Part shown: positions 19,100 through 62,999 of the stretch, piece by piece
Layout of the letters: each line of letters begins with the position of its first letter
Numbering within the stretch: the first letter of the stretch is position 1
Source of the DNA: Zootoca vivipara
Taxonomy: Eukaryota
Direction: 5' to 3'
DNA: 64,000 bases
NCBI RefSeq assembly: GCF_963506605.1
Contig: NC_083285.1
Span: 71,982,001-72,046,000, forward strand
Notes under the pieces: generated by a model
Told to the model about the DNA's origin: nothing
Database searches by the model: none
What the model saw: the letters and a program-made list of their open reading frames with translations, nothing else
Made by a program: the position numbers and the translations under genes

Positions 19100-19226
19100 G
19101 GTCCAGTGTATTTTGAAGATGTAGCTACTTGTTTCACAGATGAGGAGTGGGCGTTGCTGGATCCTGACCAGAGAGCTCTGCCTAAGGAAGTCATGGAGGA
19201 GAATCGGGGGATCTTGGGCTTTCTTG
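19100..19226 (+). CDS. KRAB-A exon of KRAB-ZNF gene
   Basis: ttttag acceptor, 127-bp exon [42 protein letters not shown], gtaagg donor; phase 1 joins in frame to 23891. Start-codon exon not identified. Confidence 0.88.
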
Positions 19227-19382
19227 GTAAGGCTTGGTTGGATCATAATATCTGTTTTTAAATTCAAGACCTATATCTATGTGATGAACTTCCCACTTAC
19301 ACAATCTGGGATTCTAACACCCCGCACAGCTTACCTCGAATGGAAGGCTATCTACCGCTTTTCTGTGATTATTCTTCCTCCA

Positions 19383-21337: not shown

Positions 21338-21359
21338 ACACATCCAAGAACAGATGTGT

Positions 21360-23267: not shown

Positions 23268-23868
23268 ATTCTTCCTCCAGTTATGCCTTTTTAATCATGA
23301 TCAGGCTGAACTTCTTAGTCCTTTTTTGATGGGGAAGTGGAAGTAGCTTCTGTCCGGTTTTTTGTTTTTGCTTCCGTCAGTTTTTGGTTGACCAAAGAGA
23401 CAATTGACTTTGGAGATGGAGTGGATTTCATGAGCCAAACAAAATCCATCCCAGGAACGAGCCAGACTTTTCAAATCTCAGGTTCCCATAAATATGTCAG
23501 TGAATGCCAGGCAATAAAGGCAGTGAACCCTATAGTACAGACAGAGCTTGCCAAACTTTTCATATTGGTGACACATTTTTTGGGACATGCATCATTTTGC
23601 AACACAGTAATTCAGTTTTGCATCATTTCGTGACACAGTAATTCAGTTTTACAAGCAACTAACCCCTTTCTAGCCCCAGGAGGAGCGTGGGATGTGTTTG
23701 TGCAAAAGAGCTACACACTGCAGTTGATACGCTAATATGTCGCAGAACACAGTTTGGAAAGCTCTGTAGTAAGACCTCATGACTAATGCCCCTCAGTTCT
23801 TCCTCTATCACAAGTGTTCATTAGCATTGTTCAATAATTTGGGGCTCCATTTCTTCCTGAGGCTCTAA

Positions 23869-25719
<1,851 letters not shown>

Positions 25720-30618: not shown

Positions 30619-33600
30619 TCAGAGTCTGCAACCTCTTGTCCACTTTGAGAGATTTTTTCCTTTGCAATGTTTCTTCCAAGCATACCTAAAAGTCAGAATG
30701 AGAGCAAAAAATGAAGCGAGGGAAGCCACATGACTTCCAAGCAACTACAAGGGAGATGGATCTTCTTTAAAAGCTCCACCACATTTCCAAGTGAGGCATT
30801 TGTGTCGGCTACAGAGTATTTCTTCCTGTTCATTGTCTCTGCTGATGATTATTTTTGGTGGTCAACGGGAAATCTACCTATTAACAGCCCATGATGCCCT
30901 GCTAGCAAAATGTTGCTTCCCATCCTCCATGGAACTTTACTGCTCAGTCATGGACAGAGCTGCTGAGCTTCTCAATGGCCTCATTCCTTGAGTCAGAATG
31001 ACTGGATCTGTCTGTATCCACCACCCACGTGCCGGTTCCTGACTAGGGGCTTCCAGATTTCACGGTCTTGCCCACGTAACCATTTGGCAACCACTATGGG
31101 ACTTTTCAGGGTTTCGCTTTGGTTTTTTTTTAGAAGTGTGAATTTGTTTTATGTGTTTTATGTTATGTGTGCTGATCAACGCACAGTCTTTGCAGTAAGG
31201 CTCTGTTCTGATGGCATGAGTATAACAATGGCCAGTAAATTCTTATCTGCTGCAGCCTTCACCCGCCTTCACAGCCATTGTAACATACCGCTTGTGTTAT
31301 GTACTGAGCTGAATCATAGAACAATAGGATCCAGAATCAGCAGTCTGATTGGTCCGCAGGAGCCACCCAATCCAAATTCCAGGTGGAAGTGAATCTGCAA
31401 CCTGATTGGCCTGCAGGAGCAGCCAATCAGGCGGCTGGCAGAAGTGAATCCGCAACCTGATTGGCCTGCAGGAGCAGCCAATCAGGCTGCTGGCAGAAGT
31501 CAATCCACAAACTGATTGGTCCACAGGTGTAGCCCTGAAGTAGCCAATCACGCAAAGCCCATTGTGTAAATAATGTATATAAGCAGATGGTTTTGGGGAA
31601 AGGGCATTCTTCTCTTCTTCTCCTTGATGACTACGAGCGGAATAAAGAGCATGAAATTCACTCTTGACTCCGAGTATATTTCAGCTTGTTATCTTCCTTT
31701 TGTTCTGCTGTTGGATTATTCTTTGTGTAGCTCCTTCCCTTTGACCGTACTGCCTTGGGTGACCCTGCTGGGAGTACGGGACTCCCAACAGCTTCGCTCA
31801 CAAGGGTCATGCAAGCCCACGAGGGAGAATCCCATTCAGAGGCACATTGTGCCTAGCAATGGAGGTGGAACAGAGTCACTGTGGCTGCTAAGCATGGGTA
31901 GCTTTCTGTGAAAGACCTCCAAGCAAACTTGGGAATGAACCATCTGCCCCAGGATTTCGCTCCAGCCCATGGCAGAACTTAGACTCTCTCCTCCTTTCCT
32001 GCATTCCAATTTATTTATTACTACATTTATACCCCACCTTTTCTCCAAGGAGCTCAAGGTGGCATACATGGTTAGACAAACACTGTGGGGCAGGCTGGGC
32101 TGTGAGACAGTGACTGACTCAATGTCAACCTTTGAACTTCCTGGCTGAATCAGGATTTGATCTCTGGTCTCCCAGTTCCTCTCTTACACATTGGCTCAGT
32201 TGCCAAATCATTTCCTTAAATCCCCACCAAGACAGCTACTAACAGCTCTTACCGGTAGTAGCCACCAGCCACCCAGGTGTTTGCTGAGTGGCTGGCTTTG
32301 TGATGTGGGTGGGGCTGTGGTCATTTCCTAGCTTCCAGCACGATGCTGCCAGTTACTCAGAGGAAGGGGGGAAATGCAGCACAGGGTCCCAGAGCAGTGG
32401 GGGCACTACTGGCTGTACATTGAAGGAAGCATCATCTTTAGCCCTTGACAGTGCCTATTGAGGAAGGTCAAGTGGAACCATCTTTCTCTACACAGTTATG
32501 TGAACTGACAACTTGGCTGGTATTGAATGTTCCAAGCACTGAGATATAAGCACTTACCATGCATTCATCCCTTGGGGGTCACGGACAATCCTCTTGGCAC
32601 AGTTAATATCATTTGTGATGTCATCATTTAAGAACGCTGGCAAAGATTTGTCAGAAAGCAAATGAGGTTACTGGGGATTCCTAAAATGCAAATCCCAGAA
32701 TACAAACACCCCCAAGGTTGCAGGGGCTGCCTCTGGACTGTGGAATGCCTTTTCCTAGAGGTCCAGCCAACACTAAGCTTGAATACTTTTGGGGAGCACT
32801 TAAAGCGTTTCCCGCTTGAGCTGGCATTCAAACATTATAGCACCAAGCAGGGGATCCCTTCTAGTCAGCTGCATTCTAGCCAGAGAAAGAAATCAGTTCT
32901 TTATAAATGGCCCATTTCATCCTCCATCCAGACAAGCAAGGTCACAGTTCCAGGACACATTGCACCCAGGTAAAAGCAGGAGGATACAGAGCAGAGGCAG
33001 TGGGACAGCATGGCCTAGTGAGAGGTCATGGCCTAGGGCAGGGGGTCAGCAAACATTTTCAGCAGGGGGCCAGTCCACTGTCCCTCAGATCTTGTGGGGG
33101 GCTGGACTATATTTCGGGGAAAAAAATATGAACAAATTCCTATGCCCCCCACAAATAACCCAGAGATGCATTTTAAATAAAAGGACACATTCTACTCATG
33201 TAAAAACATGCTGATTCCCGGACCATCCGTGGGCCGGATTTAGAAGGTGATTGGGCTGCATCCGGCCCCCGGGCCTTAGTTTGGGGACCCCTGGCCTAGG
33301 GCAATGTTTCCGAGTTTGTGGGTTGCGACCTGCAAGTGGGCAGCCAAACCAGTTGAAGTGGTTCAGTTGCTTGAGTGCTTTCTCCCCCTGTTGAAATACT
33401 TTGGTAAGGAGTGCTAGGACCTTTGTTCACACAGCTGCCTGCCTCCAGATTACTTGAAATGAAAGGTTGGGAAAGAAAGGAAGGAGCTGTGGGGTTATCC
33501 CTGTGTGCCCAGGCTGCTGCTGCTGCTGCCTGCCAGCAAGCAGTGAGCGCCTTGTTTGCATGGTAAGTAAGGCTAAATGGAATGGAGGGGTGGGGAGGAG

Positions 33601-36075
33601 CAGCAGGGATGCCCCGGCACATTCAGGATTCTGCTATCCCCCAACCACCAGCAGGTGCCTCTTTTGCCTTGTGCTGGGGACGTTTTCTTTAAAAAGGGAT
33701 GGAAAAGTAAAGGAGAGGGAGAGGTCTCCTTGCTGGGTCAGGGGAATGTTGCTGCCCGCTAGGTGGTGCTGTTGGCAGATGGTTCTTGAGCTTTATGAAG
33801 ATGCTTTTTAGAATTGGGAGTTTAGTGCTCAAGTACGGAAATGTGTGTGTGACTGTGAGAGAGACGTGCAAGTTGTGTGAGGAAGGTGGGAGAGATGTAT
33901 TTGTGATGTGTGTGTGTGTGTGATGGAGGGAGGGAGGGACAGATTTACATGTTGTTTCATGCAAGTGAGAAAAAGGGGTTACATGTATGTGTGCTCAGAA
34001 GGGAAGATATGTACAGTACTTGAGCGGAGAGGGAGAGCAGTCTGTGTCTCTGAGGGGCTGAGGTGTGGTGTGGGGGGCCAGGGGGGGCTATTGCCCCAGC
34101 ACACATTTTTGAGGGTGTGCTATCAGGAATCCCCACAAGCCCTGGCAGCTGAGGCACACTGGCAGACAGGTTGGTCTGGTGGGCAGGTGGGTGGAGGCAG
34201 CAGTCAAAGAGCCTGTTGGAGGCAGGCTCCATCCACCCTCTGCGGGGGCTCTGCAGACCACCTCCTGGTGCCCGCCCCAACCACCCAGTCCACCAGGTGA
34301 AGGGGGTGGCAACCCACACTACGCTAATGGTGAGGGGGGAGGAATGCACACATGCACATGTGGTGCATATGAGAGAGAGAGAGATCGAGATCGAGATCTG
34401 AGTGTTTGTATATCTGTGCGGTATAAGGTGGAGCGAGAGACACAAAACTTGCATGTATGTCTGTGGTCTGTATGTGCGAGGGCATGTGTGTGCTCTGTGT
34501 GTATGCAATAGTGTCGTCTGGCTACCTTGTGTAGATTTTCCTGGTACAAGGAGTGCTCCCTGGTGTTATTGGACAACAGCAGTACCAGTGTGTACGTTTG
34601 CATGTAAAAACAACTTTAAGTGACACAGTCAGGAGAAACAGGGCACAGCTGGCTTCCCATGGTAAACCTGGAAGTTTGGGGGGAGGGAAGCAGCAATGAC
34701 TGTACTGTACTCTCTACAATTTCCCCTATGCTCACCCCAATGGCTTTAACTTAAACAAATAAATGGAAATTACTATGTGAAACATTTTGAATTTCATTAT
34801 GTAGTTCCAATTTTTATTATTAACTGTGTCATTAAAAGTTAACCACAAACTCAACAAAGAAGGGGGCACAGGAAGAGAGAAGTGTGGGAGACACATTTTA
34901 AATTTATTAAGATATTAGTACCAGCATTTCTGGAAGTCCAAAATTCATTTGACAATAAATCTGTAGTCACCATGTCTTTTAAGTTTGGATTTGTGGGTCA
35001 CCATACCAAAAACATTGGGGACCACTGACTAAGGACAGTCCTGAGAGCTGGACAGATACACCTGGGCACCCCCAGGTTGTGGATTTATTTTCTTTTTTCT
35101 TTTAATCCAGCAGTTATTTTGTGGGAAATTCTCCTGAATGACAGCTTTGTATGCATTTTTCTGTAATCTAATGCACTTTTGTATGTAATTTTTGTAAATA
35201 TATCTATTTATAGGCATACTGTGCCCAATGCAGTTCAAAGAATGTGCTGTGTGTTTGTCTGTGTATTATTTCATAAAGTGCAAATTAGGTAGATTCACCT
35301 TCAAATGTGAACTGAATTAAAGAAGTGGAAGCTAGCATTCCCTATAGTATCAAGTTGCTTACCATAGCAGGAGATGCTACACCCATTGGCTGTTGGGCGA
35401 TGTCCATTGTCGCACCACCAGCGGCTGCTTATCTGAAAGATTCCATACTCACGATTGCCGCTGGAGGTTTGTGGCCCCATGAGTCTGGTGTTAAATGAGC
35501 TTTGATGATAAGCGGCACAGATCCCTGGAACAAAGCGAACAAGAAAAGGGTTACAATTTGGGTACACGCTGGGTGTGCAATCTCTTTTTTTTTGTCAAAG
35601 TTGCAGCATTTTGAAACAGAATAATTTAAAAACATTCTTACAATGTTCACGGTAAAAGCTGTCTGTAACGTCTAAACCCCCCCCCCAAATGGTCCTAAAT
35701 AGAAATTTTTTTCATAATCTCACATTAGTAAGGAGGATAAATTTGGTTTGGTTTGGCCCTTTAGATGTGCAGTGAGGTGAATCTTTTTATGTCTGCTTCT
35801 TGATCTTTCAAAGATTAATGAGAGTTCGGACATTCTGATGGGCAGCAGGGTTTGTGTGAACCATTTCCTGAAAAGCAGTCCCCATTTCTACTTTGCCTCA
35901 AAACACCAGAAATAGCAAAGAAAGGAGGAGCGAACTCACAGTTGGCCAGGCTGACGCCACGATATCCATCCATCCCAGCCCGTTTCAATCGCGCAGCCAG
36001 TTCACATCTCCCAAACACTTTGGCTTCATTCCCTGCAAGGAGGAGGCAGAAGAGGGTGAGGGCCAGAACCATCAT
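30619..36075 (-). CDS. c-type lysozyme-like paralog A (147 aa, cationic, E35Q/D52E); exons 36075-35940, 35524-35363, 32636-32558, 30685-30619
   Basis: Exons of 136/162/79/67 bp with GT-AG sites splice to [147 protein letters not shown]; 8 Cys; AATAAA at 30365-30360. Confidence 0.93.
31295..31683 (+). mobile_element. Solo LTR (389 bp, CCAAT-rich) in intron 3 of lysozyme A
   Basis: TGTTA...TTTCA, TSD GCTTG (31290-31294, 31684-31688), 55-bp internal repeats, TATA and AATAAA; same family as 63584-63962. Confidence 0.88.
33039..33293 (+). mobile_element. hAT (Charlie-like) MITE
   Basis: CAGGGG(G)TC...GACCCCTG termini, 8-bp TSD GCCTAGGG. Confidence 0.85.
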
Positions 36076-36126
36076 CTCTGCGATTCTCTGGAGAGAGATG
36101 CTTGGATTCCCTGGGGTCCCCAGTGG

Positions 36127-36134
36127 CTTTTGTA
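36127..36134 (-). promoter_or_regulatory. Variant TATA box (TACAAAAG) of lysozyme A
   Basis: Same position and flanks as TATAAAAG of paralog B. Confidence 0.55.
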
Positions 36135-37174
36135 GACCAAAAATTTGGGCAGAGTCCAGATGGTAAGCAGAACACTGATGGGGGGTGGAATAAATATTGA
36201 CAGTAACCCCGCTCCCTGCAAAAAAAAACCAAAAAACAGACACATGGTGCAATTCTGTTTTGATATATGATTAGGAAATATCTCCATATTTATTTATCAT
36301 TTTAAATGGAAGAGATTAAAGCAGGCAGCATATATGCGCTTAAAGACATAGCATCTGTGTAATAGTAAATAATTACCTAATAGGGAAAAAGGCAGACTCC
36401 TGGGACAGAGGGACATTGTCCTGCTGTAAGGGCTGAGGAGCCCAGACTCACTGGAACAAACTCTGGGGTTGGGGCAAATGTCGAGAATGCTTTAAAATGC
36501 TTTAAAATAGTTTTTAATCTGGGCCGTTTTAGTTTTAGTTAGTTAGTTAGTTTGTTTTGTTTTCCTCTGTTGGGGGTGGGATAAACATTTAGTTGGGGCT
36601 GGGGATTAGTTTAATTTTAGTATAGCTGTAAATTCTTGTTGTTGTTTTTTAAAAATTAGTTTCTACTGTTTTATTGGTTTATTGTATAGGTCCCTCTACT
36701 TATAGGTGGATGGAGGACTGTTGAAACCTTGTGGGAAGCCAAATATCTTTTACAGGAGAGTTGTCACAAAGGACCCTGCAGGGCAGAAGAACATGAGAAG
36801 AGCCATCTGGATTTGAGTAATTCTCTTGTGCAAAATCCTTCAGATCCACATCTCATACCATCATTTCTGACTGCCTGGGCTTTCTCTCCACCATCTGCAG
36901 CTCAATGGCTTGTCTCCAAATCCACAAATTGACTCCTGATTCCTCTCTTCTCCCTGGACAATGGTGGACGTTGATCTTTAAAATTTCAGTGATGCCTGGT
37001 GCAAGGACAAAACTCAGCACCCCTACCCCACACCTCATGTGGGAAAACATTGCCCTAAACCCATCTCTGCCCCAGGAACCACCAAATCTGTTCTGAGAGT
37101 CATTCCAATCTTTAGAGCAGATTTTGAGGTTACCTGGGGGAGTCTTCAGTGGAGAGGAGGGAAATGTCCTATAC

Positions 37175-37334
37175 AAAGCAACATAAAAAGATTCCTTCCA
37201 GTAGCACCTTAGAGACCAACTAAGTTTGTCATTGGTACAGTATGAGCTTTCATGTGTCTCTAAGGTGCTACTGGAAGGAATTTTTTAATTTTGTTTCGAC
37301 TACGGCAGACCAACACGGCTACCTACCTGTAACT
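37175..37334. mobile_element. Penelope fold-back mini-element
   Basis: Inverted copies of the Penelope end, partial hammerhead at the centre, GGCTACCTACCTGTAAC tail on the right. Confidence 0.8.
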
Positions 37335-37689
37335 CTACCAAGCAGTAATCTCTTGCCTGAACATGACAGCAGCCTTGGAAACAACCAAATCATTCCAGCA
37401 ACAAACTTTTCTATGCCATTGATCATACTCTCTATATCCATTTTTCCAAAGGAAGGGCAGGTATAATCCTCTCTTTTCCCTGAATGCTCCTTGATCACCA
37501 ACCTGCTGCTTTCTGAACTGGTCTGAATGTGTGTGTTGTGCTCTTTGTATTTTACTTGTAGTGCTGAATCAACACTTTGTTTTGATATTGTTGGCAATGG
37601 CAGGCATTGGCATAAAATTGTGTGCATTGTTGTGAATCTATGTGTCTGTGGGAGAGAGATGGGGGCTCAGAAAAGGGACACTCCAAAGT

Positions 37690-38191
37690 GAGGATATGGC
37701 CAACTATCACCCAGTCTCAAATCTTCCATTCTTGGGCAAGATGATTGAGCGGGTGGTTACTGAACAACTCCAGGCATGCCTGGAGGATGTGGACCATTTG
37801 AATCCCTTCCCATCAGGATTGAGGCCTCATCATGGGACTGAATCTGCCTTGGACGAGCTGCTTGATGATCTCTGGCAAGCTAGGGACAAAATTAAAAGCT
37901 GTTTCCTAGTTCTGCTGGATCTCTCAGCAGCCTTTGATACCATTGACCATGACATCCTTCTGGAATGTCTAGAGGAGCTGGGAGCTGGGGGCACTGTTAT
38001 ACGGTGGTTCCGCTCCTTCCTCCTGGGCCATGTCCAGAAAGCGGTGTTGGGAGATGAGTGTTCAGACCCCTGGGCTCTCACTTGTGGGGTGCCTCAGGGT
38101 TCTGTTCTCTCCCCCATGCTTTTTAACATCTATATGAAGCCGCTGGGAGAGATCATCAGGGGGTTTGGGCTGGGTGTTCATCAGTATGCGG

Positions 38192-38226
<35 letters not shown>

Positions 38227-39770
38227 TTATTATTTATACCCCGCCCATCTGGCCGGGTTCCCCCAGCCACTCTGGGCGGCTTCCAAAAAAACAGAAATTC
38301 TAAAATACAGAAATCTATCAAACATTAAAAGCTTCCCTAAACAGGGCTGCCTTGAGATGCCTTCTAAAGGTCTGGAAATTGTTCTCTTTGACCTCTAGTG
38401 GGAGGGCATTCCACAGGGTGGGTGCCACTACCGAGAAGGCCCTCTGCCTGGTTCCCTGTAACTTGGCTTCTCGTAATGAGGGAACCGCCAGAAGGCCCTC
38501 GGAGCTAGACCTCAGTGTCCGGGCAGAACGATGGGGGTGGAGACGCTCCTTCAGGATGATACCCAGCTCTACCTCTCTTTTAAATCAGAACCAGTGAAGG
38601 CGGTGAAGGTCCTGTGTGTCTGGAGGCGGATGGAGGGTGGATGGCGGTTAACAGATTGAGGTTGAATCCTGACAAGACAGAAGTGCTGTTTTGGGGGGGA
38701 CAGGGGACGGGCTGGTGTGGAGGACTCTCTGGTCCTGAATGGGGTAACTGTGCCCGGCGCACAGCCTGGGAGTCATTTTGTCCATGGAGGTGCAGGTTAA
38801 TTCTGTATCCAGGGCAGCTGTCTACCAGCTCCATCTGGTATGCAGGCTGAGACCCTCCCTGCCCACAGACTGTCCCAGTAGACCTGAAGGAGCGTCTCCA
38901 CCCCCAATGTTCAGCCCAGACACTGAGGTCCAGCTCCGAGGGCCTTCTGGCAGTTCCCTCCCTGTGAGAAGTGAGGTTACAGGGAACCAGGCAGAGGTCC
39001 TTCTCAGTAGTGATGCCCACCATGTGGAACGTCCTCCCATCAGATTGTGGGAATGTTCAGGGTTGCAGGAGAGGATATATTGTTTATTAATATCCTTCCT
39101 AACTTGCACTAGCAAGTTCCTTTACTTAGCAGAGTTTACATTCCCCTTCTCACGCACAGCAGAAAGCTGGTTGCAGGCTTGTTAGAACCTCTTACTATTA
39201 TGCAATTCAATCTGGCTCAGATTGAATTGTATGTTCTTGGTCAGATCCCCTTTTAAACTTTACTCACGATCAGGCAGAGCACAGTGTGATCCCTGAAGGC
39301 AGGCTTTAGGCTTAAAGTTACAAACTTATACTAACAGGTTTACCCCATAAGGGAGATGACCTGGGGGACTGTTTGACTGGCAGCCAGCAGTCCAGGAAGT
39401 TTGCAGAAGAAGATCAAAGAGAGAGAGAGAGGTGGCTGCGTGACTTGTCCTTTCACCAGGTCCGGGAAGGTCACGCCCACCCACTAGTCACATGCAAGGA
39501 AGGATACTCCAGGCCAGGAGGAACAGGATGTTTCGACTGGCTGGAGTAACATCCCCTTGCATGTCCACTCTAGCAAAACAAGGAATATTGTATTTGACTG
39601 CTCCCAGTGGATTACAACCCACACAGATGTCAAGGAAATAAACAACTATCTGACTTTTAGAAGACATCTGAAGGCAGCTCTGTTTAGGGAAGTTTTTAAT
39701 GTTTGATGTTTTATTGTGTTTTTAATATTCTGTTGGGAGCTGCACAGAGTGGGCAGGGTATAAATAATAA
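37690..39770 (+). mobile_element. L2-type LINE fragment with nested insertions
   Basis: [41 protein letters not shown]; interrupted by an inverted 3' end of the same family (~38192-38555) and by a solo LTR. Confidence 0.85.
39046..39623 (-). mobile_element. Solo LTR (578 bp) inside L2
   Basis: TGTGGG...CCCACA termini; TSD CAGAT at 39041-39045 and 39624-39628; strand inferred from TTTATT near 39083. Confidence 0.8.
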
Positions 39771-40486
39771 GTTGTTGTCATAATCTCTGTTCCAAGACAG
39801 TTCACTCTGCTCTATCAAGAAATTCCTCATCTTTCCCATTAGCTCAAAGTGTGGGTAGGTGGGCCTCAAGTTGCTGTACCTCCTCTTCCAGCAAGACAAC
39901 CAGCTTGTGCTTGCTGGAGGAGTAATTTTGCGTATTCACAGGTAGGAGGACAAACATGGAATGAGCGTAGCCAAGGGGTGGGGTAATCTGACCTCAAAAG
40001 CTCAACAAAAATCCTGGCTATGCCCATGAAATATGGCACAGATATTCCTTATCATTCATGTCTCTTGGTCCAATGTACACTGTGAAGTAGCACTCCGGGT
40101 CTCCCTCTCAAACTCCTGGATTTGAGCTCCCAGAGACTGCAAACAGCTAAAGAGAACTGTGCTGAATCGAAACAAACAGCAATGGGGTTTTCTATGGAAT
40201 GCTATTTGTTCTGATTTAGAACTAAAGAACAGGTTTCCGAGGGGAAAGCAGCAGGGCCAAGGCAAAACCTATGTCTAGAAAGCACAAGCAGAAAACTTCC
40301 TGACCTGTGCTTTCCAGGTACGGGTCAGGTGAAAGTGTTGACAGGCTCTGTATCTACACAGGTTGTACCTCCTAGAGACTAGCATGGTTATAAAAGTAAT
40401 CAGCAATTCATCAGCTTGCCCATGCTGGTTATTGGACACTATTACACAGGTATTGTGGTGCAGCCCAACTTGCCTCTCAATTTCCT

Positions 40487-40755
40487 GGCAACCTAGCAGT
40501 TCGAAAGCAAGCCAGCGCAAGTAAATAAATAGGTACTGCTGTGGCGGGAAGGTAAATGGTGTTTACATGTGCTCTGGCTTCAGCCACGGTGTTCAGTTGC
40601 GCCAGAAGTGGTTTAGTCCTTCTGGCCACATGAGCTGGAAAGCTGTCTGGGGACAAACACCAGCTCCCTCAGCCTGAAAGCAAGATGAGCGCTGCAACCC
40701 CATAGCCACCTTTGACTGGACTTAACCATCCTGGGGTCCTTTACCTTTTTTACCT
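40487..40755 (+). mobile_element. Sauria SINE, 5'-truncated
   Basis: CAACCTAGCAGTTCGAAAGC...GGGGTCCTTTACCTTT. Confidence 0.8.
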
Positions 40756-41152
40756 TACCTCTCAATTATGTAACAACAACAACAATTCTTCTTCCTTAAT
40801 AACCAATAAGTACTCAGTGGAATCAGGGAACAGAGCAATGTTTGATTGCTTCTTGCTTTTTGCCCCTCCCATTCACCCATCAAACAGGAAAAGAGTTTTA
40901 ACTGGACTCAATTTATTGAAGTTCTTAAAGCAGAGAAGCCAAGAATGCCAAGCAAGACCTCCAGACACATTTTTTTTTATTTAAAAATGCACTCTCTCCT
41001 TCCTGTAGAAAGAGAGCTATTCTACTGCACCATAGGAGTTACAGTATGTAAATGCTTGTATGGAAACAAGCAGCTGGATTTTGATTGTAGAGATCACTTT
41101 CACTGAAGGGGAAATCCAGAGAAATGCTGCATCTCATACAGGACTATGGAGC

Positions 41153-44100
41153 TCAAAGGCTGCAGCCAATTGTCCACTCAGAGAGATCCTTTCCTTTGCA
41201 ATGGTTCTTCCAAGCAACCCTGAAAGAAAAAAATTGAAAGCAAAAAATGAGGATGGTGGGGAGTAATGCGACAGCTCTTTGGACTGCTATGGGTGAAATG
41301 GATTGCTTTTAAAAACCTCCGAAAGCTTCCCAGTGAGGCATCAGCTGCTCATTCCCTCTTGCTGTTCACTGTGTGACCTTGACTGGGCCAGACTAACCAT
41401 AGAATCACATCATGTTTTGCCCCCTGGCCCCCCTCCTGCTCCCCTGCCATCTATTAAAAACCCATCCCTGATTTCTTTTCTTTTCTTTTCTTTTAACAAC
41501 ACAGGGACTCGTGCAATTTACAAGACACACCATGGCCTCTCCAAGAAATAAATCATTCCCAAGTTCATGTTACATACATTAAAGTTGCCAAATGCCAATA
41601 ACTGTCCTTGTATTTAGTTTTACAAGATGCATGTGTAACAAGGTTCTGCCAGTGGTGTAAAATGATTGTCATTTTTTCTTTTCCTTGCATAATCTGCATT
41701 TTAAGGACAATTTTCTTTCTATTGCTAAAATCCAAACCGTTCTGTACTGTACTGTCAAGTTTAGGCTACCCAGATTTCCCCCCTGTCAGGTGATGATTTG
41801 TCCGGCTACAATTAGCAAATGCAAAATTAAGTCCTTGATAAGCTTATTATACCCTGTAAACATAGAAAGCAAAAAACATTCTGGAGTGAATTCAAGATTA
41901 TCACTTGTAATGCTAATCAGTTCCCTTTGGACATTAGACCAGAACCTTCATATTGAGGTGCATTTCCATCAGAAGAATGACCAGTGTTGGTGGTCAATGT
42001 AGAGTCTACCTATCCACACCCCAGAATGGCCTGATGGAACCTCATTTGTCATGGAACTTTAAGCATTCTAAAGACCAGCTTTCTCAAAGCAGGTGCCCTC
42101 TGTATATTTTGGACTACAACTCCCATCATCCATGTCTGTTGGCTGCACTGGCTGAAGGTGATGGAAATTAGAGTTCAAACTATTGGGAAGGTGCCAAGCT
42201 GGGAAAAGCTGCTCAAGATCCTTGTATTTGTATCCATTCTCCTAGTTTTCTCATAAACCACTTTTTAACCCCCCAGGACGAAGAACAAATGGAAAAGCTG
42301 CAGTACATGAACCTAATAAGAGCCTGGCTGGGTCAGGTGGAAAGACTATCTATTGCAGCTCCTGAACCGCTTGCTGTGCTGTGCGATGCTATGCCTTGTA
42401 GTGGCCTTGAACATAAGAACATGTTCCCCAACAATTTGCCAGGTATCAGACTCTCACACTGGCTCAGGACTGCAATACCTCAAAGACCACCTCTCTCAAT
42501 ATGAACTGTGACCAGAACCTTGTATTGATCATCTGAGGCCCCTCTAGATGTAATAATAATAATCTGCTTATTTACAGCTACTGTTTCTGGGTATGAGGAA
42601 GCAAGGGGAAATCTTTAAAATAGTTTCAGTTTCCCAAAGTCATCTGCCCCAGGGTTTCCCCCCAATCAGCAACCAAACTCATACTGCCTCATCCTTTCCT
42701 ACATTACAATCTATTTATTATTATACCTATATTCCACATTTCCTTCAAGGCACTCGGGGTGGCCTATGTGGTTCTCCCCTCTCTCTTTCTTATCTTTTCA
42801 AGAACCTTGTGAGGTAGATGAGGCTGAGAGACCAAGTATCAGCCCGTGAGCTTGCAGTGGCATAGCATGGGAGGGCACAGGGGCAGTTGCTGTGGGTGCA
42901 CAATTGTTAAAGGTAAAGATAAAGGGGACCCCTGACCATTAGGTCCAGTCATGACCGACTCTGGAGTTGCGGCGCTCATCTCGTGTTATTGGCCGAGGGA
43001 GCCGGTGTACAGCTTCCAGGTCATGTGGCCAGCATGACAAAGCTGCTTCTGGCAAACCAGAGCAGCACATGGAAACAATGTTTATACCTATTTACCTACT
43101 TGCACTTTGACAAGCTTTCGAACTGCTAGGTTGGCAGGAGCTGGGACCGAGCAACGGGAGCTCACCCCGTCACGGGGATTCGAACCGCCGACCTTCTGAT
43201 CAGCAAGCCCTAGGCTCTGTGGTTTAACTCACAACGCCACCCACGTCACTTGTTAGGGGTGGAAAATTTTAACACCCAGTGCTGCCTCAATACAGCTGTG
43301 CCCTTCTGTTGCTGGGCTCTCTTGAAAATGGTTTCTCCATGTGAACCCAGGAAGAGACCTCTCCAGACAACAGAAAAACTCTTCTAATCCCTGCAACTGC
43401 AATCTCCTGCGTGACACCAACACTGTTAGGCAGTGTGCATGTGTACTTCAAGCATTTCCCTTCCTCCCACTGACCCCTCTGCACGGCCCGGGTGCTGGCA
43501 ACCCGTGCTATGCCACTGTAAGCCAGGATTTGAACTTAGGCCTGTCAGGTCCATCACTTTTAACCACTGCTGTACAGTTGTTAGACTGTTCCCTTAAACT
43601 CACACCTGGATACTTACAGCTCCCAATAGGCAACAGCCACCAAAAGCCACTGCTGTACGTTTAAGGAAGCACCTTGGAGGCATCACCAGTGTCTAGTAAG
43701 GAAGAATCTTTAGCTGCTAGCTGCAACAAAGCCTGGTGAAAGACACATCCCTATGCAGTCACAACGATCGAAATCTCAGCTGCTATTGAGTCTTGGCAGC
43801 AGTGAGAAGTTAGCAAGACTCACCAGGCATCCATCCCTTGGGGGTCACGAACGACTGTCTTAGCACACTCAATGTCATCTGTGATGTTGTCATCTGTGAA
43901 AGCTGTTGAAAAAAATAGCAGAAAGAAAAGGAGGGTATTTGGTTTTCTAAAGAGCTTCTTTCCAACCCCATAAAGCAAATCCTGCCTTTGCACTCAGGAA
44001 GGATACATTGGGTTGCCTCAGAATCGTGGAAGTGCTTTCCCCTTCAAACTCAAAGCCAGAATACTTTGGGTGGGTTAATGGAGAAGACTCTTTATGCAGC

Positions 44101-45476
44101 CAGCTGCAGTAGCCACAGAACAGCCAGAGTTTTCAACCCCCATCTTGTCTCTTTATCCTCCAGACAGGCAAGCAAGGAGGTCTCATCACAGTTCAAGCGC
44201 CCATTCAGGTGAAGCACTTGAGCGGGACACAGAACAGGGCCGTGAGAGAGGGCATGGGCAAGGGAAAGTCATGAGAGGTGGACAGATATGTCTGGAAGGC
44301 CACATTTGCCCTGTGTGGGGGTTATGTGTTTGTGTGTTAATTATAGTGACTACAAGTTCAAGAGAAATGTTTTCCCTCTCCCCTCATCATGTGTGCCCTG
44401 TGCCCTTGCCAAATCTGCTTCAGAGTGTCAGGGGGACACACCCCCCCCCCACCCTTATAACAGATTGAGGAGTCGTGCTGGGAGAGGAGAGGGGCATGAT
44501 CTTCCAGTGAGGAAACAGAAATCCTTGGCTTATGGAACATTTATTTAGTGCTGTGTTGGATTCCACCCTTTGCTGGCTACTCAGTAACAGCTGTAGGAAT
44601 CATAATAGTGCTACTTATTCACACAATTAATTCACCTTACTCAAACCATTCCGGCTGTCATCATGTATGGGTGAAGGCCTGAAAATGCATTTTCTTACAC
44701 TAGAATCATGGAGGGCTAAAGAGTGTGTCTGGGAATAGGTAGTGGGGGTTTTTTTTGGGACTGCCTCCCCTTCCATCCTTGACTGAAGTTTGGAGAAAGG
44801 GGAGCAGAAGAAGCCGATGTGTTGATGATGGTTTCCAATAAGAACTGGATCTGGGGGCGAAGAGGAAGCAATTCTTCAGAACTATTCAACAGAGAGGGAC
44901 AGGTAATGGTTTTTATTTGCTTCTCCTGCAAGACTCAGTTGTTGGCAAGGAACAGGGCACGAACTTCAGTTTGTTCTTCACCCTATTATCTTATTTGCAC
45001 TTCCTGAAATAATATGCCATCTTAAAGACAGATATCTTTCAAAAGAGAACAACATAGAAAGATGCATTACATTAGTTACAGTTGCATACAAATGTATGTA
45101 TATTAGGAGAAATGCAACCAAAAATGCAAATGAATGTGCTACTCTTAAAAAAAACAAAACAATTTTAGGCAGAAATATGGAGAACTGAACTTTAGACAGG
45201 GAAAATGAGAAACTGCCTTACTGGAAGGCCACTTCTAAATGGCCATTGCTGTAGTGGTGGAGTTGCAAGGGTGAGGCAAGGGACACAGGAGTAGGATGTA
45301 TGAGCAACAGATCAGACCTCTCTCTAGGGCACCACAGACACCAGGAATAAACAAGACAATAGCCATGCATTAGTTACTATCACTGTATGGCGGGGTGGAA
45401 GTGGGTATGATAGCATCTCATGCCATTCAGTACAAGTGTGGAAGTCAGAACTTGTTCAGTGAGAGGATTTAATATT

Positions 45477-45507
<31 letters not shown>

Positions 45508-48500
45508 TTTATACCCCCCCCCCCACCATCTGGCATACATCACTCTGGTGAGACTGTGGGCAGGGGGGATCTCAGCCTGCGTACCAGATGGAGCTGGTAG
45601 ACAGCTGCCCTGGACACAGAACTGACCTGTGCCTCCATGGACAGTTGGGAGTCCAAAATGTCTCCCAGGCTGCGCACCTGGTCCTTCAGGGGCAGAGTTA
45701 CCCCATTCAGGACCAGGGAGCCCCACACACCTGCCCACCCCCTTTGGCTGATTAAACAATCTAGAGCCTTTTAAACAATAATAATATTATAATATTAACA
45801 ATAATAGTATTAACAATAATAATGACAGGAATGGACAGATTTGTCCTCCGTTGTTGCTTCTGTGAACCAGTGACAAGGCAGGTCTCCCAAGCATGCTGGC
45901 CTCACCTTCTGGACTGCAGGGAGCCTGGTCCCTCCGAGATGGCTGGTGGGTCAGGGCAACAAGAGAGAAGCCCGAGGTTGTTGAGGTGGGCAAAGCAAGG
46001 CTAGGCCTGTCCCTGGTCTTCGCTTATTAGAACAGAGACACAAGTTGGAATGTCTTGGGGGTGGGTGGCAATAGGAATGTAGTGATAAGGTGGGGAATGA
46101 GGTTTCTAAGTGAGGGTGTGGATTGCAGTGGGAGAATGGGAACTGAAGGGAGACAAACGGGTTGCTCCCTTCAAAAACACAACCCATTCTCTTTGGGAAA
46201 TCGCAGAGACCTTTTGTTAGCCTTCTGTATGACACCAAGTTGCTTACCACTGCAGGAGATTCTGCATCCATTGGCTGTTTCGCCCTGTTGATTGTCACAC
46301 CAATAGCGGCTGTTTATTTGAAAAACCCCATAGTCCTGACTGCCATCTGTGTTTGGTGGCCCCACAGCACTACTTTCGTATTTGCTTTCATGGTAAGCTG
46401 TGCAGATCCCTGGAACAAAGTGAGAAGGGAAAGGGCAGAGGAGAGAGGAAACAACTTGAAAGCATTCTCTCAGTTAACTGTAGCAAATGTGTGTGACTTA
46501 AAAACAAAACAGCACTGAAAAGAAACATTTAGAGGTTATGCATTGGATTCAGGCAAAGCCTGAACAGAACTTGACTAATCTGGGCTTTCGCCAAGAATGA
46601 GTGGAGGCAGCCCTGGACTGCTGCAGATATGGGGCTATTGGCTGGGGCATCAAGCAGGGAGAAGGAGAGGCAGGGAACTCTAACACAGGGGTCTGCAAAC
46701 TTTTTCAGCAGGGGGCTGGTCCACTGTCCCTCAGACCTTTGGGGGGGGCGGACTATATATATATATATTTTGGGGGGGATGAAAAAATTCCTATGCCCCA
46801 CAAATAACCTAGAGATGCATTTTAAATAAAAGGACACATTCTACTCATGTAAAAACACGTTGATTCCTGGACCGTCTGGGCCGGATTGAGAAGGCGATTG
46901 GGCCACATCCAGCCCCTGGGCCTTAGGTTGCCTACCCATGCCCTAGCACTTGTAAACCAGCACCCAGGAGAAATGAATCCTCCGTTTATCAGCTGATGAG
47001 CAAAGGATTTGATGCTGCTGTGCTCTGGAGTATTGTGCTTTGCAAAGCAGCCCCCCCCCCGACTGAATCCTCAATGAAGTTGGAAGCAGAGAGGAGACAT
47101 AGCTCTTAGAATCACAGAATGATAGAAGTGTAGAGTTGGAAGAATCATCTAGTCCAACCCCCTGCAGTGCTAAAGTATCCATGGCCATCCAACCTCTGCT
47201 TAAAAACTCCCTATAAACTCCCTTCATGGATCAATGCCTTGTCGTGGCGAAGGGGCTTGAATAACTCAGAGAAGCTATGAGCTATGCCATGCAGGGCCAC
47301 CCAAGATGGACAGGTCATAGTGGAGAGTTTTGACTAAACGTGATCCACCTGGAGAAGGAACTGGCAAGCCACTCCAGTATCCCTGCCAAGAAAACTCCAT
47401 GGACAAAGACAACAGGCATATAAAAGTTATGACGCTGGAAGATGAGCCCCTCAGGTCGGAAGGCGTCCAACATGCTACTGAGGAAGAGCGGAGGACAAGT
47501 ACAAGTAGATTCAGAGCTGATGAAGCGGCTGGGCCAAAGCCGAAAGGACGCTCAGTTGCGGATATGCCTGGAAGCGAAAGGAAAGTCCGATGCTGTAAAG
47601 AAAAATATTGCATAGGAACCTGGAATGTAAAATTTTTAAAAGATGATGCTGTTAAGGTGCTACACCCAATATGCCAGCAAGTTTGGAAAACTCAGCAATG
47701 GCCAGAGGATTGGAGAAGATCAGTCTACATCCCAATTCCAAAGAAGGGCAGTGCCAAAGAATGCTCCAACTACCGCACAATTGTGCTCATTTCACACGCT
47801 AGCAAGGTTATGCTTAAAATTCTACAAGGCAGGCTTAGGCAGTATGTGGACTGAGAACTCCCAGAAGTGCAAGCTGGATGTCGAAAGGGCAGAGGAACCA
47901 GAGACCAAATAGCAAACATGTGCTGGATTATGGAGAAAGCTAGAGAGTTCCAGAAAAACGTCTACTTCTGCTTCATTGACTATGCAAAAGCCTTTGACTG
48001 TGTCGACCACAGCAAACTATGGCAAGTTCTTAAAGAAATGGGAGTGCCTGATCACCTCATCTGTCTCCTGAGAAATCTCTATGTGGGACAAGAAGCTACA
48101 GTTAGAACTGGATATGGAACAACTGATTGGTTCAAAATTGGGAAAGGAGTACGACAAGGTTGTATATTGTCTCCCTGCTTATTTAACTTATATGCAGAAT
48201 TCATCATGCGAAAGGCTGGACTAGATGAATCCCAAGCAGGAATTAAGATTGCCGGAAGAAATATCAACAACCTCAGATATGCAGATGACACAACCTTGAT
48301 GGCAGAAAGTGAGGAGGAATTAAAGAACCTATTAATGAGGGTGAAAGAGGAGAGCGCAAAATATGGTCTGAAGCTCAACATCAAAAAAACCAAGATCATG
48401 GCCACTGGTCCCACCACCGCCTGGCAAATAGAAGGTGAAGAAATGGAAGCAGTGAGAGATTTTACTTTCTTGGGCTCCTTGATCACTGCAGATGGTGACA

Positions 48501-50485
48501 GCAGTCACGAAATTAAAAGACGCCTGCTTCTTGGGAGAAAAGCAATGACAAACCTAGACAGCATCTTAAAAAGCAGAGACATCACCTTGCCGACAAAGGT
48601 CCGTATAGTTAAAGCTATGGTTTTCCCAGTAGTGATGTATGGAAGTGAGAGCTGGACCATAAAGAAGGCTGATCGCCAAAGAATTAATGCTTTTGAATTA
48701 TGGTGCTGGAGGAGACTCTTGAGAGTCCCATGGACTGCTAGAAGATCAAACCTATCCATTCTTAAGGAAATCAGCCCTGAGTGCTCCCTGGAAGGACAGA
48801 TCGTGAAGTTGAGGCTCCAATACTTTGGCCACCTCATGAGAAGAGAAGAATCCTTGGAAAAGACCCTGATGTTGGGAAAGATTGAGGGCACTAGGAGAAG
48901 GGGACGACAGAGGACCAGATGGTTGGACAGTGTTCTCGAAGCTACGAACATGAGTTTGACCAAACTGCGGGAGGCAGTGCAAGACAGGAGTGCCTGGCGT
49001 GCTATGGTCCATGGGGTCACGAAGAGTCGGACACGACTAAACGACTAAACAACAACAAACAACATAAAGGAGATTCCTCTACCTTCTGAGGGAGACTGTT
49101 CTACTGTCAAACAGCTCTTACCATCAGTACTAGTTACAGGTAGGTAGCCATATTGGTCTGATGCAGTCAAAACAAAATAAAAATAAAAAAATCCTTCCAG
49201 TAGCACCTTAGAGACCAACTATGTTTGGCATAGGTATGAGCTGGTATTTGAAGAAGTGTGCATGCACACGAAAGCTCATACCTATGGCAAACTTAGTTGG
49301 TCTCTAAGGTGCTACTGGAAGCTCTTACCATCAGGAATCACTTCTCCTTTCTTGTAACTTGAATCCATTGGTTTGGGTTCTACTCTCTGGAGCAGGAGTG
49401 AACAAGCTTGCTCCATCTTCCATGGGACAGCCCTTTAGATATTTGAAGACAGCTATCATATCTTCTCTCAGTCTCCACTTATCCAGGCCAAACATACCCA
49501 ACTCCCACAACCATTCCTCATAAAGCTTGGTTTCCAGATCCTTGGTGATCTTGCTCGTGAATATCCAACTTGTGAATATCCTTCTTAAATTGTGGTGCCC
49601 AGAGCTGGACACAGTGGAGCATACTAGTTGGGTAAGAGAGCTGGAGGGGTGGATCACATCTGGCAATCAATGTTCCCCTTTGCTTTCAGATAGTACATGG
49701 GTTGTTGTTTGTTGTTGTTTAGTCGTTTAGTCGAGTCCGACTCTTCATGACCCCATGGACCAGAGCACGCCAGGCACTCCTGTCTTCCACTGGCTCCCGC
49801 AGTTTGATCAGACTCATGTTGGTGGCTTCGAGAACACTGTCCAACCATCTTGTCCTCTGTCGTCCCCTTCTCCTAGTGGTTCCCTCGCTACGAGAAGCCA
49901 AGTTACAGGGAACCAGGCAGAGGGCCTTCTCGGTGGTGGCACCCACCCTGTGGAATGCCCTCCCACCAGAGGTCAAAGAGAACAACAATTACCAGACCTT
50001 TAGAAGGCATCTCAAGGCAGCCCTGTTTAGGAAAGCTTTTAATGTTTGATTTCTGTATTTTAATGTTTTGTTGGAAGCCGCCCAGAGTGGCTGGGGGAAC
50101 CTGGCCAGATGGGCGGGGTATAAATAAATTATTATTATTATTAACAATCCAGGGGTCCTTTACTTCTTTTTTTATTGGCATTATTTTCTGCACTCCCACC
50201 CCACTAGTATGTTTAATTAGGGTTTCAAAAACTCCAGTTAAACTTTAGCCTCAAACTGAAAATGATTCTGGGCTGAATCCTGGTTGGGCAGGATTTGTCC
50301 CCAAACACCTAAAATGGCCAAGATTGAGGGAAAGGAAGAGCAAACTCACAGTCGGCCAGGCTGATGCCGTGGTATTGATCCAGTCCATGCTGTTTCAGAA
50401 GTGCAGCCAGTTCACATTTCTCAAACACTTTGCCTTCCTTCACTGAAATGAGGAGGCAGAAGAGCGTGAGGACCAAAACCTTCAT
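41153..50485 (-). CDS. c-type lysozyme paralog B (147 aa, calcium-binding type, acidic); exons 50485-50350, 46409-46248, 43902-43824, 41219-41153
   Basis: Exons of 136/162/79/67 bp splice to MKVLVLTLFCLLISVKEG-KVFEKCELAALLKQHGLDQYHGISLADWICTAYHESKYESSAVGPPNTDGSQDYGVFQINSRYWCDNQQGETANGCRISCSAFTDDNITDDIECAKTVVRDPQGMDAWVAWKNHCKGKDLSEWTIGCSL; catalytic E and D intact; AATAAA at 40917-40912. Confidence 0.94.
42909..43249 (-). mobile_element. Sauria SINE
   Basis: Near full-length match to the other copies. Confidence 0.88.
45475..45735 (-). mobile_element. L2-type fragment
   Basis: LKDQVRSLGDILDSQLSMEAQVSSVSRAAVYQLHLVRRLR; (CAA)n adjacent. Confidence 0.75.
46686..46940 (+). mobile_element. hAT MITE, same family as 33039-33293
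   Basis: Shared internal sequence; degenerate TSD CTCTAACA/CCCTAGCA. Confidence 0.8.
47226..49064 (+). mobile_element. RTE-BovB LINE with 5' end retained and endonuclease region deleted
   Basis: 5' UTR plus MTLEDEPLRSEG...IGTWNV joined directly to KFLKDDAVKVL (~47630); stop at 47852; RT to 49048; (CAA)n tail. Confidence 0.93.
49066..49625 (-). mobile_element. CR1 3' fragment (3' terminus at ~47105-47210), interrupted by BovB and a Penelope mini-element
   Basis: LGMFGLDKWRLREDMIAVFKYLKG; AGAATC-type terminal repeats near 47110. Confidence 0.8.
49128..49319. mobile_element. Penelope fold-back mini-element with hammerhead (C3>U)
   Basis: Inverted arms; 15-bp TSD AGCTCTTACCATCAG at 49113-49127 and 49320-49334. 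Confidence 0.85.
49700..50143. mobile_element. BovB 3' end (minus, 49700-49876) abutting an L2-type 3' end (plus, 49877-50143)
   Basis: (TTG)n tail with RTRWLDSVLEATNMSL; L2 3' end with (TTA)n tail. Confidence 0.8.
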
Positions 50486-55675: not shown

Positions 55676-56629
55676 ATGGGTCATGATCCTTCTATCAACT
55701 GTACCATGGTGACCGAGTTTGTCCTGTTGGGGTTCACTAGTCACCCAGGCTTGGCTCGACTGCTCTTTGGACTCTTCCTCCTGATGTTTGCCGTGACCTT
55801 GGCAGGCAACGGGCTGATTATGACTGTGGTGTGGACTGATCCTCTCCTCCATACCCCCATGTACCTCTTCCTGGGCAGCCTTTCATGCTCTGAGACAGCC
55901 TACACTCTGGTGGTCATACCACAAATGCTTGGTGACCTGCTGGCTCCCCAGAGGCCCTTTCCCTTGGCATCGTGTGCGGCTCAGATGTTCTTCTTTGTGG
56001 CCTTAGGGGTGGCTGACTGTCTGCTGTTGACAGCCATGGCATGGGATCGCTATGTGGCCATCTGTCACCCACTACACTATGGGGCCTTCATGAGCCAACG
56101 GATTTGTTGGTGCTTAGTGATGGGGTCTGTCTGTGGTGGTTTCATTCTTTCTTCCTTCCTCACTGGAGTGATTTTCTCTTTGCCATTTTGTGCGCCCAAC
56201 CATATCCCCCATTTCTTCTGTGACATCCCTCCTGTGCTGAGCAGGATATGTCCTGGCTATGGAACTATGGAAATTCTCGTTACAACCTTGGTTGCCATGA
56301 TCCTCATCATCCCTTTCTCCTTCATCATGCTGTCTTACGGGTGCATTTTGATGGCTTCCTTGCACATGAGCTCGTCTCAGTACTGTCGCAAGGCCTTCTC
56401 CACCTGTGGAGCCCACTTGACAGTGGTCTTTCTTCACTATGGCTGTGCCATCTTCTCATATGCCAGACCCAAAGGCAGCTATATTGAAGGCCAGGACCAT
56501 ATCCTTGCGGTGTCTTACACTGTTCTCATTCCCATGCTCAACCCTCTGATCTACACTCTAAGGAACAATGAAGTGAAGGGAGCCCTTAGGAAGATGATGT
56601 GCCGGGGTTGCCTTATTCCTAAGGGGTAG
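55676..56629 (+). CDS. Olfactory receptor, intact (317 aa, class II, family-10-like)
   Basis: Single exon; LHTPMYLFL, MAWDRYVAICHPLHY, HFFCD, KAFSTCGAHL, PMLNPLIYTLRN; N-glycan sequon NCT. Confidence 0.96.
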   Translation: MGHDPSINCTMVTEFVLLGFTSHPGLARLLFGLFLLMFAVTLAGNGLIMTVVWTDPLLHTPMYLFLGSLSCSETAYTLVVIPQMLGDLLAPQRPFPLASCAAQMFFFVALGVADCLLLTAMAWDRYVAICHPLHYGAFMSQRICWCLVMGSVCGGFILSSFLTGVIFSLPFCAPNHIPHFFCDIPPVLSRICPGYGTMEILVTTLVAMILIIPFSFIMLSYGCILMASLHMSSSQYCRKAFSTCGAHLTVVFLHYGCAIFSYARPKGSYIEGQDHILAVSYTVLIPMLNPLIYTLRNNEVKGALRKMMCRGCLIPKG

Positions 56630-62888: not shown

Positions 62889-62999
62889 TCACCAACAATA
62901 ATGGTGATGGGATTGAGTCACACTCCAATTACTATAGTTTGGGGGCATCTTTACTATCCCGGCAGATAATTCCACATCTTGGGAAGAATTTACAACGTC

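Follow-up and report, generated by a model that had tools for sequence, protein, structure and literature searches.

A tandem lysozyme gene pair in the lizard Zootoca vivipara, one member with both catalytic carboxylates replaced

Two lysozyme genes and their active-site residues

The window analysed here, a stretch of 64,000 nucleotides of Zootoca vivipara (contig NC_083285.1, positions 71,982,001 to 72,046,000), contains two intact four-exon c-type lysozyme genes in tandem, both on the minus strand, termed A (36075-30619) and B (50485-41153), and A carries Gln and Glu in place of the catalytic Glu35 and Asp52 of lysozyme. The coding exons are 136/162/79/67 nucleotides long in A and in B alike, all introns are GT-AG, and each gene encodes 147 codons plus a stop; the intact open reading frames (ORFs), canonical exon sizes and eight cysteines that a first-pass annotation, made from the letters alone, had ascribed to both genes were borne out exon by exon. 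Sequence searches were run with the exons unjoined, and full-length work used the database proteins XP_034972592.1 (P0028; A) and XP_034972602.1 (P0012; B), which hold each exon piece exactly, in order and one residue apart at the split codons. Both are Zootoca vivipara RefSeq models named "lysozyme C, milk isozyme-like", and they share one 72,123,690-base Zootoca contig with the olfactory receptor (OR) gene of the window. Both genes are already annotated, and the missing catalytic pair of A is not in the annotation. A tblastn search of the whole window with the exon pieces of A returned nothing above noise beyond the A and B copies. Against the Pfam profile Lys (PF00062; cut-off 27), the full-length proteins scored 160.6 bits (A) and 156.7 bits (B), and both show the features of the GH22/PF00062 family, namely the profile match, eight cysteines and four coding exons with conserved phases; the four-exon plan of this lysozyme family is described in PMC3141428.

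Residues are numbered as in canine milk lysozyme, where the catalytic pair is 35/53 (53 being Asp52 of hen egg-white lysozyme) and the calcium ligands are Asp85, Asp90 and Asp91. HMMER alignments to solved lysozymes placed Gln opposite Glu35 and Glu opposite Asp52 in A, and demonstrated that Glu35 and Asp53 are both kept in B; the alignment of A with canine milk lysozyme, its best solved relative, is gapless over 129 residues. A therefore lacks both residues that define a strict lysozyme, the general acid Glu35 and the nucleophile Asp52/53, and B has both. The calcium loop reads LNDDITND in A, TDDNITDD in B and LDDNIDDD in canine milk lysozyme, so that the ligand positions are N85 D86 D87 .. 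N90 D91 in A and D85 D86 N87 .. D90 D91 in B, the latter the same as in the canine protein. Summed over the exon pieces, mature A has 20 K/R and 8 D/E (net +12) and mature B has 11 K/R and 19 D/E (net -8), each with eight cysteines. These alignments and counts agree exactly with what had been read off the letters, that is, HQS, REYG, two calcium-loop Asp replaced by Asn and a charge of about +12 for A, and HES, QDYG, TDDNITDD and about -8 for B. A also keeps the cleft residues Trp63, Trp64, Trp108 and Trp111. The TDDNITDD loop of Zootoca B (window positions 43874-43894) reads TNDDITDD, with Asn85, in the B proteins of Podarcis, Lacerta and Rhineura (P0025, P0026 and P0014); Asp and Asn at 85 and 87 are swapped in Zootoca B, and the full Asp85/90/91 triad is thus present only in Zootoca among the B orthologs.

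The combination of Gln35 and Glu53 (Q/E) is not private to this assembly. HQS and REYG were found in 8/8 proteins of the 90% cluster of A, isoforms included, and the Q/E state is present in 5/5 lacertid species (Zootoca, Lacerta agilis, Podarcis raffonei, P. lilfordi and P. muralis), in all of which Q35, L42, T47, N51, E53, S60, Y109 and N119 of A are invariant. Zootoca A is 89-92% identical to its counterparts in the other lacertids, the same range as the 90-95% of a catalytic paralog, C-3, and the 92.5-95% of B. The cysteine columns are invariant across 49 sequences. The AlphaFold2 model of A has a mean predicted local distance difference test score of 91.7 (93-99 over the mature domain), and Foldseek superposed it on hen lysozyme with a template modelling score of 0.95-0.96 and a root-mean-square deviation of 1.0-1.2 A (angstroms).

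Descent of the pair and relation to alpha-lactalbumin

A first tree was built from 72 rows of 245 proteins, leaving out the OR proteins (P0016-24), fragments and isoforms (P0003, 5, 8, 13, 27, 32-34, 39-42, 67) and redundant fish and primate rows (P0071, 72, 75-77, 79, 80, 84, 85, 87, 89, 91, 92), and keeping 11 rows from a representative-protein search with B as query, the rest of which were dropped. A more careful tree and the constraint tests described below used 57 rows, after a further 15 long-branch or partial rows had been dropped (P0237, 96, 213, 176, 188, 208, 173, 195, 177, 94, 95, 83, 90, 10, 93). In the 57-row tree all squamate "milk-isozyme-like" proteins form one clade (98/93), which is sister to Sorex Lysc1 (99/92; one Lysc1 and no LALBA in the tree) and is separate from the LYZ proteins of crocodilians, echidna and fish; with Sorex Lysc1 the identity is 51-54%. 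Because the squamate clade is sister to Sorex Lysc1 and the best solved relatives of A are the mammalian calcium-binding milk lysozymes (Lysc1; canine and equine; PDB 2z2e/1el1/1qqy/2cwi), the placement of A and B in the calcium-binding "milk isozyme" lineage is supported by the protein comparisons. B shares with Lysc1 milk lysozyme Glu35, Asp53, the DDN..DD calcium loop and the same four-exon structure (PMC3141428); A, unlike Lysc1, is without both catalytic carboxylates and two calcium ligands, and its likeness is one of sequence and tree position.

B forms a group (100/98) with its counterparts in other lacertids and in the amphisbaenian Rhineura, and A is nested with the catalytic lacertid paralogs C-3 and D in a lacertid-only clade (100/99). 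C-3 is 81% identical to A and lies on a 64-Mb contig, D lies on a 59-Mb contig in P. lilfordi, and A itself lies on a 72-Mb contig. The candidate reading of A and B as sister duplicates was rejected on these trees. Furthermore, A nests with C-3 and D and is only 62% identical to its neighbour B, indicating that the pair is not one duplicate split into two roles. As judged from the trees, A lost its catalytic pair after its separation from C-3 and D, as a later event in a dispersed family. The first-pass proposal of a loss of muramidase function after duplication of a calcium-binding lysozyme therefore stands in part: A is without both carboxylates and two of the three calcium-ligand Asp, B keeps all of them, and the lineage is the calcium-binding one; what falls is the pairing itself, since the trees show that A and B are not each other's products. 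Scattered catalytic losses (K35, V35, T35, A35, H53, G53, N53, Y53) were also observed in snake and anguid "milk isozyme-like" proteins (P0055, P0064, P0065, P0086, P0062, P0061, P0011, P0188). The annotated squamate "lysozymes" would, on their residues, be functionally mixed, and such a mix under the name "lysozyme C, milk isozyme-like" matters for the annotation of reptile innate immunity. In snakes and Rhineura the paralogs lie on one large contig (5 listed proteins in Erythrolamprus, 3 in Vipera); snake Q/E and SPACA3-like genes share one contig, and lacertid A/B, C-3 and D are on three different contigs.

In alpha-lactalbumin (LALBA), Glu35 is likewise lost and a Glu stands at the Asp52 position, and A could on this ground be the squamate counterpart of LALBA, a regulatory subunit derived from a calcium-binding lysozyme at the LALBA/Lysc1 locus. 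The sister relation of the squamate clade to mammalian Lysc1 speaks for such a counterpart, as does the gene neighbourhood: mammalian Lysc1 adjoins Lalba amid OR genes, beside C12orf41 (KANSL2) (PMC3141428), and OR and KRAB-ZNF genes flank the pair in Zootoca. However, the position of A within a lacertid-only clade together with catalytic paralogs would make its loss recent and independent, and LALBA is acidic and binds calcium (PMC7565966), whereas A has a charge of +12 and Asn at two of the three Asp ligands. The OR neighbours are named 10R2-like, and PMC3141428 treats LALBA as mammal-only, reports no assignable non-mammalian ortholog for Lalba or other lysozyme-like genes, and describes OR genes as poor synteny markers. 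Neither KANSL2 nor CCNT1 was found within the 64-kb window, in which the neighbours are only OR ("10R2-like") and KRAB-ZNF genes, and no lactalbumin was recognised among the single-domain matches inspected from the representative-protein search with B, most matches being multi-domain and presumed invertebrate. Altogether, a squamate clade sister to Lysc1 in an OR/KRAB-ZNF setting is compatible with homology to the LALBA locus, as the first-pass annotation had suggested, and synteny with LALBA/Lysc1, if real, would bear on the origin of the lactalbumin lineage. A itself, by its charge, calcium site and tree position (the last being indirect, as it comes from a tree without LALBA), appears to be no LALBA counterpart, and that identity is considered extremely improbable. 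Like alpha-lactalbumin, A would be a non-catalytic protein of the shared Pfam family with a calcium-binding lysozyme as its ancestor; it differs from that acidic protein, which needs its calcium site, in being cationic with a degraded site and in having arisen inside lacertids.

Recurrence of the replacements in snakes and scorpions

Gln35 was present in 16/87 tabulated lysozyme rows, 15 of them with Glu53, although these rows had been retrieved by words shared with A and are biased to A-like sequences. Outside lacertids the Q/E pair occurs in Protobothrops, three Crotalus species and Laticauda, and Pseudonaja has Gln at both positions (Q/Q). The snake forms are nested among catalytic snake paralogs, with the elapid Q/Q form grouping with elapid proteins that keep Glu35 and Asp53 and the viperid Q/E forms standing beside Vipera. 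No Q/E form was found among the retrieved proteins of Salvator, Rhineura, Pogona, Tiliqua, Elgaria, Eublepharis and Gekko, a weak negative because retrieval depends on annotation. Two comparisons served to identify derived sites: lacertid A was set against C-3 and other squamates, and the snake Q/E forms against catalytic snake paralogs. There are 15 such sites in lacertid A and 13 in the snake forms, and eight are shared (35, 42, 47, 51, 53, 60, 109 and 119), compared to about 1.5-2 coincidences expected by chance (hypergeometric p 4e-6, or 3e-5 over variable sites only); at six of the eight the residue is identical (Q35, T47, N51, E53, S60 and N119). By gapless alignment, canine positions 47, 51 and 60 are Asn46, Ser50 and Asn59 of hen lysozyme, which we take to be the hydrogen-bond partners of Asp52, and residue 109 presumably adjoins the pocket of Glu35.

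When lacertid A and the snake Q/E forms were forced into one clade using all columns, the cost was 40 log-likelihood units and the clade was not rejected (approximately unbiased test, p 0.08). With the eight shared columns removed, the cost rose to 79 units and the clade was rejected (p 0.002); both the constrained group and the dropped columns were picked after the data had been seen, and the p-values are optimistic. The rest of the protein, by these tests, appears to contradict common descent of the lacertid and snake forms. Two histories of the snake package would remain: convergence, or inheritance of an old Q/E paralog that gene conversion with neighbouring paralogs has homogenised except at selected sites. 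The constraint tests do not tell convergence from gene conversion, and either requires selection on the package. At the DNA level, C-3 matches A at 95% identity or more in exons 3 and 4 and in the 3' half of exon 2, but upstream of 35444 the two diverge sharply, a mosaic that gene conversion could produce.

A third occurrence was found in scorpions, where the "lysozyme c-1-like" proteins of Centruroides vittatus and C. sculpturatus (P0094 and P0269), as well as a Logan contig protein (P0095), carry Q35/F42/E52/S59. In the tree they fall within an arthropod clade (95/98), next to a catalytic scorpion lysozyme (95/86), so that their origin is independent of the squamate forms, by convergence. 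Contamination by, or gene transfer from, squamates was rejected as an account of the scorpion proteins, given that two Centruroides genomes carry them (contigs of 860 and 603 kb) and that they group with the catalytic scorpion lysozyme. The recurring package (Gln35, Glu52/53, Ser59/60 and a bulky residue 42, with Thr47 and Asn51 in squamates) could be a convergent functional redesign of the active site, reached independently in lacertids, in snakes (possibly twice) and in scorpions, towards a non-turnover binder or trap of cell-wall glycans or an enzyme with a new mechanism; this is put forward tentatively.

In the stomach lysozymes of ruminants, langurs and the hoatzin, a set of shared replacements likewise recurs in independent lysozyme lineages, and these proteins stay active and are adapted to acid and pepsin; the recurring Q/E set, unlike them, removes the catalytic pair. 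A convergent redesign, if true, would be a second textbook case of lysozyme convergence, in this instance towards loss of turnover. Literature searches returned no paper on a squamate Q35/E53 (E35Q/D52E) lysozyme or on the recurring package, within a coverage that ended short of the supplement of PMC3141428, which treats anole genes and could mention such residues.

A might still be an enzyme with a retuned site, in which Glu53 rebuilds the nucleophile pocket together with the newly introduced Asn51 and with Thr47 and Ser60, both smaller than the residues they replace, yielding a slow glycosidase or transglycosylase, an enzyme for another substrate, or a covalent trap. It is precisely the surroundings of the nucleophile that have changed, and lacertids, snakes and scorpions show the same set, a pattern suggestive of design and not of decay; in other squamate paralogs with catalytic loss the replacements are scattered (V35, K35, T35, H53, G53, N53). 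The title of PDB entry 1h6m describes a covalent glycosyl-enzyme intermediate of hen lysozyme, reportedly made in an E35Q background. A retuned enzyme is nonetheless judged unlikely, since Gln35 is unable to act as general acid/base, no alternative acid was identified, and experimenters use E35Q to inactivate the enzyme (PMC6887759).

Transcripts, predicted role of A and flanking sequences

Three raw RNA-sequencing runs with the same species label (X20, X21 and X22) and one contig set were mapped to positions 30500-36150; about 6% of each run was read, which makes for a shallow sample, and the tissues are unspecified. No A-specific reads were found in the three runs. Reads cover exons 2-4 and span the exon 2/3 joint as modelled (32636/35363; 96, 56 and 17 reads in X20, X21 and X22), and at the diagnostic position 35376 the letter of the paralog was present in 100/100, 57/57 and 17/17 reads, respectively. 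Almost every read also departs from the window letter at 35374, 35428 and 32597, and the divergent letters translate to R, S, N60 and V, as in the C-3 paralog (P0002). The reads cease to fit at 35443/35444, where A and C-3 diverge, and none fall on exon 1. The C-3 letters, the point at which the fit ends and the empty exon 1 together indicate that the reads are transcripts of the paralog. A second variant was observed in run X22 at 32569 and 32590. None of the indexed RNA runs contains the stretch, and the small-share matches (X6 checked) fall on intronic repeats, not exons. The expression of A that the first-pass proposal presupposed was thus not seen in these runs; a count of zero from so shallow a sample is no proof of silence.

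If A were silent and decaying into a pseudogene, with an open frame left over and a similarity to C-3 that reflects recent copying, this would account for the lack of A reads alongside good coverage of the C-3-like paralog, and would fit the altered TATA-like box of A. However, the frames, splice sites and all eight cysteines are intact in 5/5 lacertid species, the divergence of A matches that of the catalytic paralogs with the eight derived sites invariant, RefSeq models exist, Podarcis records include forms with an alternative first exon, and the RNA sampling is shallow and of unspecified tissue. Silence is therefore considered very unlikely. The TATA-like box reads TACAAAA upstream of A (approximately 36125-36135) and TATAAAA upstream of B (approximately 50535-50545). 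The A orthologs of Podarcis lilfordi and P. muralis (P0032 and P0033) are annotated as 152-residue forms with another first exon and signal peptide.

Taken together, these data are best accounted for if A is a conserved, muramidase-dead, cationic lysozyme-like binder or antimicrobial, which is held to be probable. Both genes would derive from a squamate expansion of the calcium-binding "milk-isozyme" c-type (GH22) lysozyme lineage. B, with Glu35, Asp53 and Asp85/90/91 present, is predicted to be a working acidic secreted muramidase with a complete calcium site. A would be a secreted pseudo-enzyme in which the general acid Glu35 has become Gln and the nucleophile Asp53 has become Glu, the putative holders of the catalytic Asp in hen lysozyme (Asn46, Ser50 and Asn59) have become Thr, Asn and Ser, two calcium ligands have become Asn, and the surface charge has risen to +12. 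A retains the predicted lysozyme fold with its four disulfides, and the tryptophans of the sugar cleft. Such a protein would not turn over peptidoglycan, and selection may keep it for a non-hydrolytic role, most likely the binding of cell-wall glycan (peptidoglycan or chitin), the killing of microbes by a cationic non-muramidase route, or both. The cleft, being retained, would suit a protein that binds peptidoglycan or chitin but does not turn them over. The charge of +12 fits a cationic non-catalytic antibacterial route, such as has been described for a catalytically inactive lysozyme acting through its cationic character (PMC2587705); a non-catalytic antibacterial action of lysozyme is also described in PMC1933452.

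Several observations weigh against this reading of the pair. The loss of activity in A is deduced from its residues, and the concerted replacements near Glu53 could as well point to a retuned site as to a dead one. A-specific reads are missing from the three RNA runs, and the TATA-like box of A is altered. The comparison of A with B within the window (dS approximately 0.52, dN/dS 0.46, summed exon by exon) says little. Lastly, the calcium site predicted for B would rest on a triad without counterpart in its own orthologs, which have Asn85.

Lysozyme c is a model for enzyme mechanism and convergent evolution, and alpha-lactalbumin is the classic recruitment of an enzyme fold; insect lysozyme-like proteins are a further non-catalytic lysozyme case. 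Non-catalytic lysozyme paralogs (LALBA, SPACA3, LYZL4 and SPACA5) are already known (PMC5104373), and catalytic-residue replacements were common among the lysozyme proteins retrieved here. Like A, SPACA3/SLLP1, SPACA5 and LYZL4 are c-type paralogs with replaced catalytic residues, and they have non-bacteriolytic roles (PMC5104373); Glu52 is also present in squamate SPACA3-like proteins (A35/E52) and primate SPACA5 (E35/E52). They differ from A in belonging to another, older clade (72-row quick tree, with weak support and open forks), in being without the T47/N51/S60 package and in not being notably cationic (SPACA5, -6 to -7). Engineered hen lysozymes (E35Q, D52N, D52S and E35A; PDB 3ok0, 3ojp, 1lsy and 1h6m) have the same fold with replacements of the catalytic pair and serve as inactive forms, but these are single laboratory changes, whereas A occurs naturally, differs at eight co-varying positions and has gained much charge. 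With the catalytic pair and the presumed hydrogen-bond platform of the nucleophile swapped, the gene intact in every lacertid examined, and a recurrence in snakes and scorpions, A offers a direct test of the route from glycosidase to non-catalytic protein and of its repeatability.

The exons of A and B and the flanking genes are listed in Table 1. The OR and KRAB-ZNF setting described in the first-pass annotation was recovered from the ORF list and Pfam in the form of a KRAB exon, a 20-finger exon and two OR ORFs; the KRAB exon was found in this way, and a KRAB-box regular expression gave no match. The second OR ORF is probably disrupted by an insertion.

Table 1. Coding exons of the two lysozyme genes and flanking genes in the window
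Feature	Position	Strand	Remarks
A exon 1 (coding part)	35940..36075	-	ATG, 18-residue signal peptide, mature residues 1-27 and first base of Trp28; donor GT; Pfam Lys 23.7 bits; exact in P0028
A exon 2, 162 nucleotides, active-site exon	35363..35524	-	Gln35, Leu42, Thr47, Asn51, Glu53, Ser60; Pfam Lys 51.3 bits
A exon 3, 79 nucleotides	32558..32636	-	Calcium loop LNDDITND (Asn85, Asn90)
A exon 4 (coding part, stop TGA)	30619..30685	-	Tyr109, Asn119, cationic C-terminal tail
B exon 1 (coding part)	50350..50485	-	TATAAAA box upstream; exact substring of P0012
B exon 2, 162 nucleotides	46248..46409	-	Glu35 and Asp53 kept; Pfam Lys 53.9 bits
B exon 3, 79 nucleotides	43824..43902	-	Calcium loop TDDNITDD (Asp85, Asn87, Asp90, Asp91, as in canine milk lysozyme)
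B exon 4 (coding part, stop TGA)	41153..41219	-	tblastn and splice check
KRAB-ZNF gene	19106..25719	+	KRAB-A exon 19106-19258 (Pfam KRAB 56 bits), 20-finger exon 23902-25719
Olfactory receptor gene, intact	55676..56629	+	90% cluster mates in other lacertids named "olfactory receptor 10R2-like"
Second OR-like ORF	62979..63821	+	Fits OR profile only to position 166 of 280, then unrelated sequence; disrupted or truncated

Mobile elements were also observed in the window. A long open gag-pol of a long terminal repeat element occupies 9246-14488, a near-perfect inverted pair of 553-residue Penelope-like ORFs lies at 19708-22989 in the KRAB-ZNF intron, and reverse-transcriptase ORFs of long interspersed nuclear elements lie at 6747-9103 and 47330-49048, one of them within intron 1 of B.

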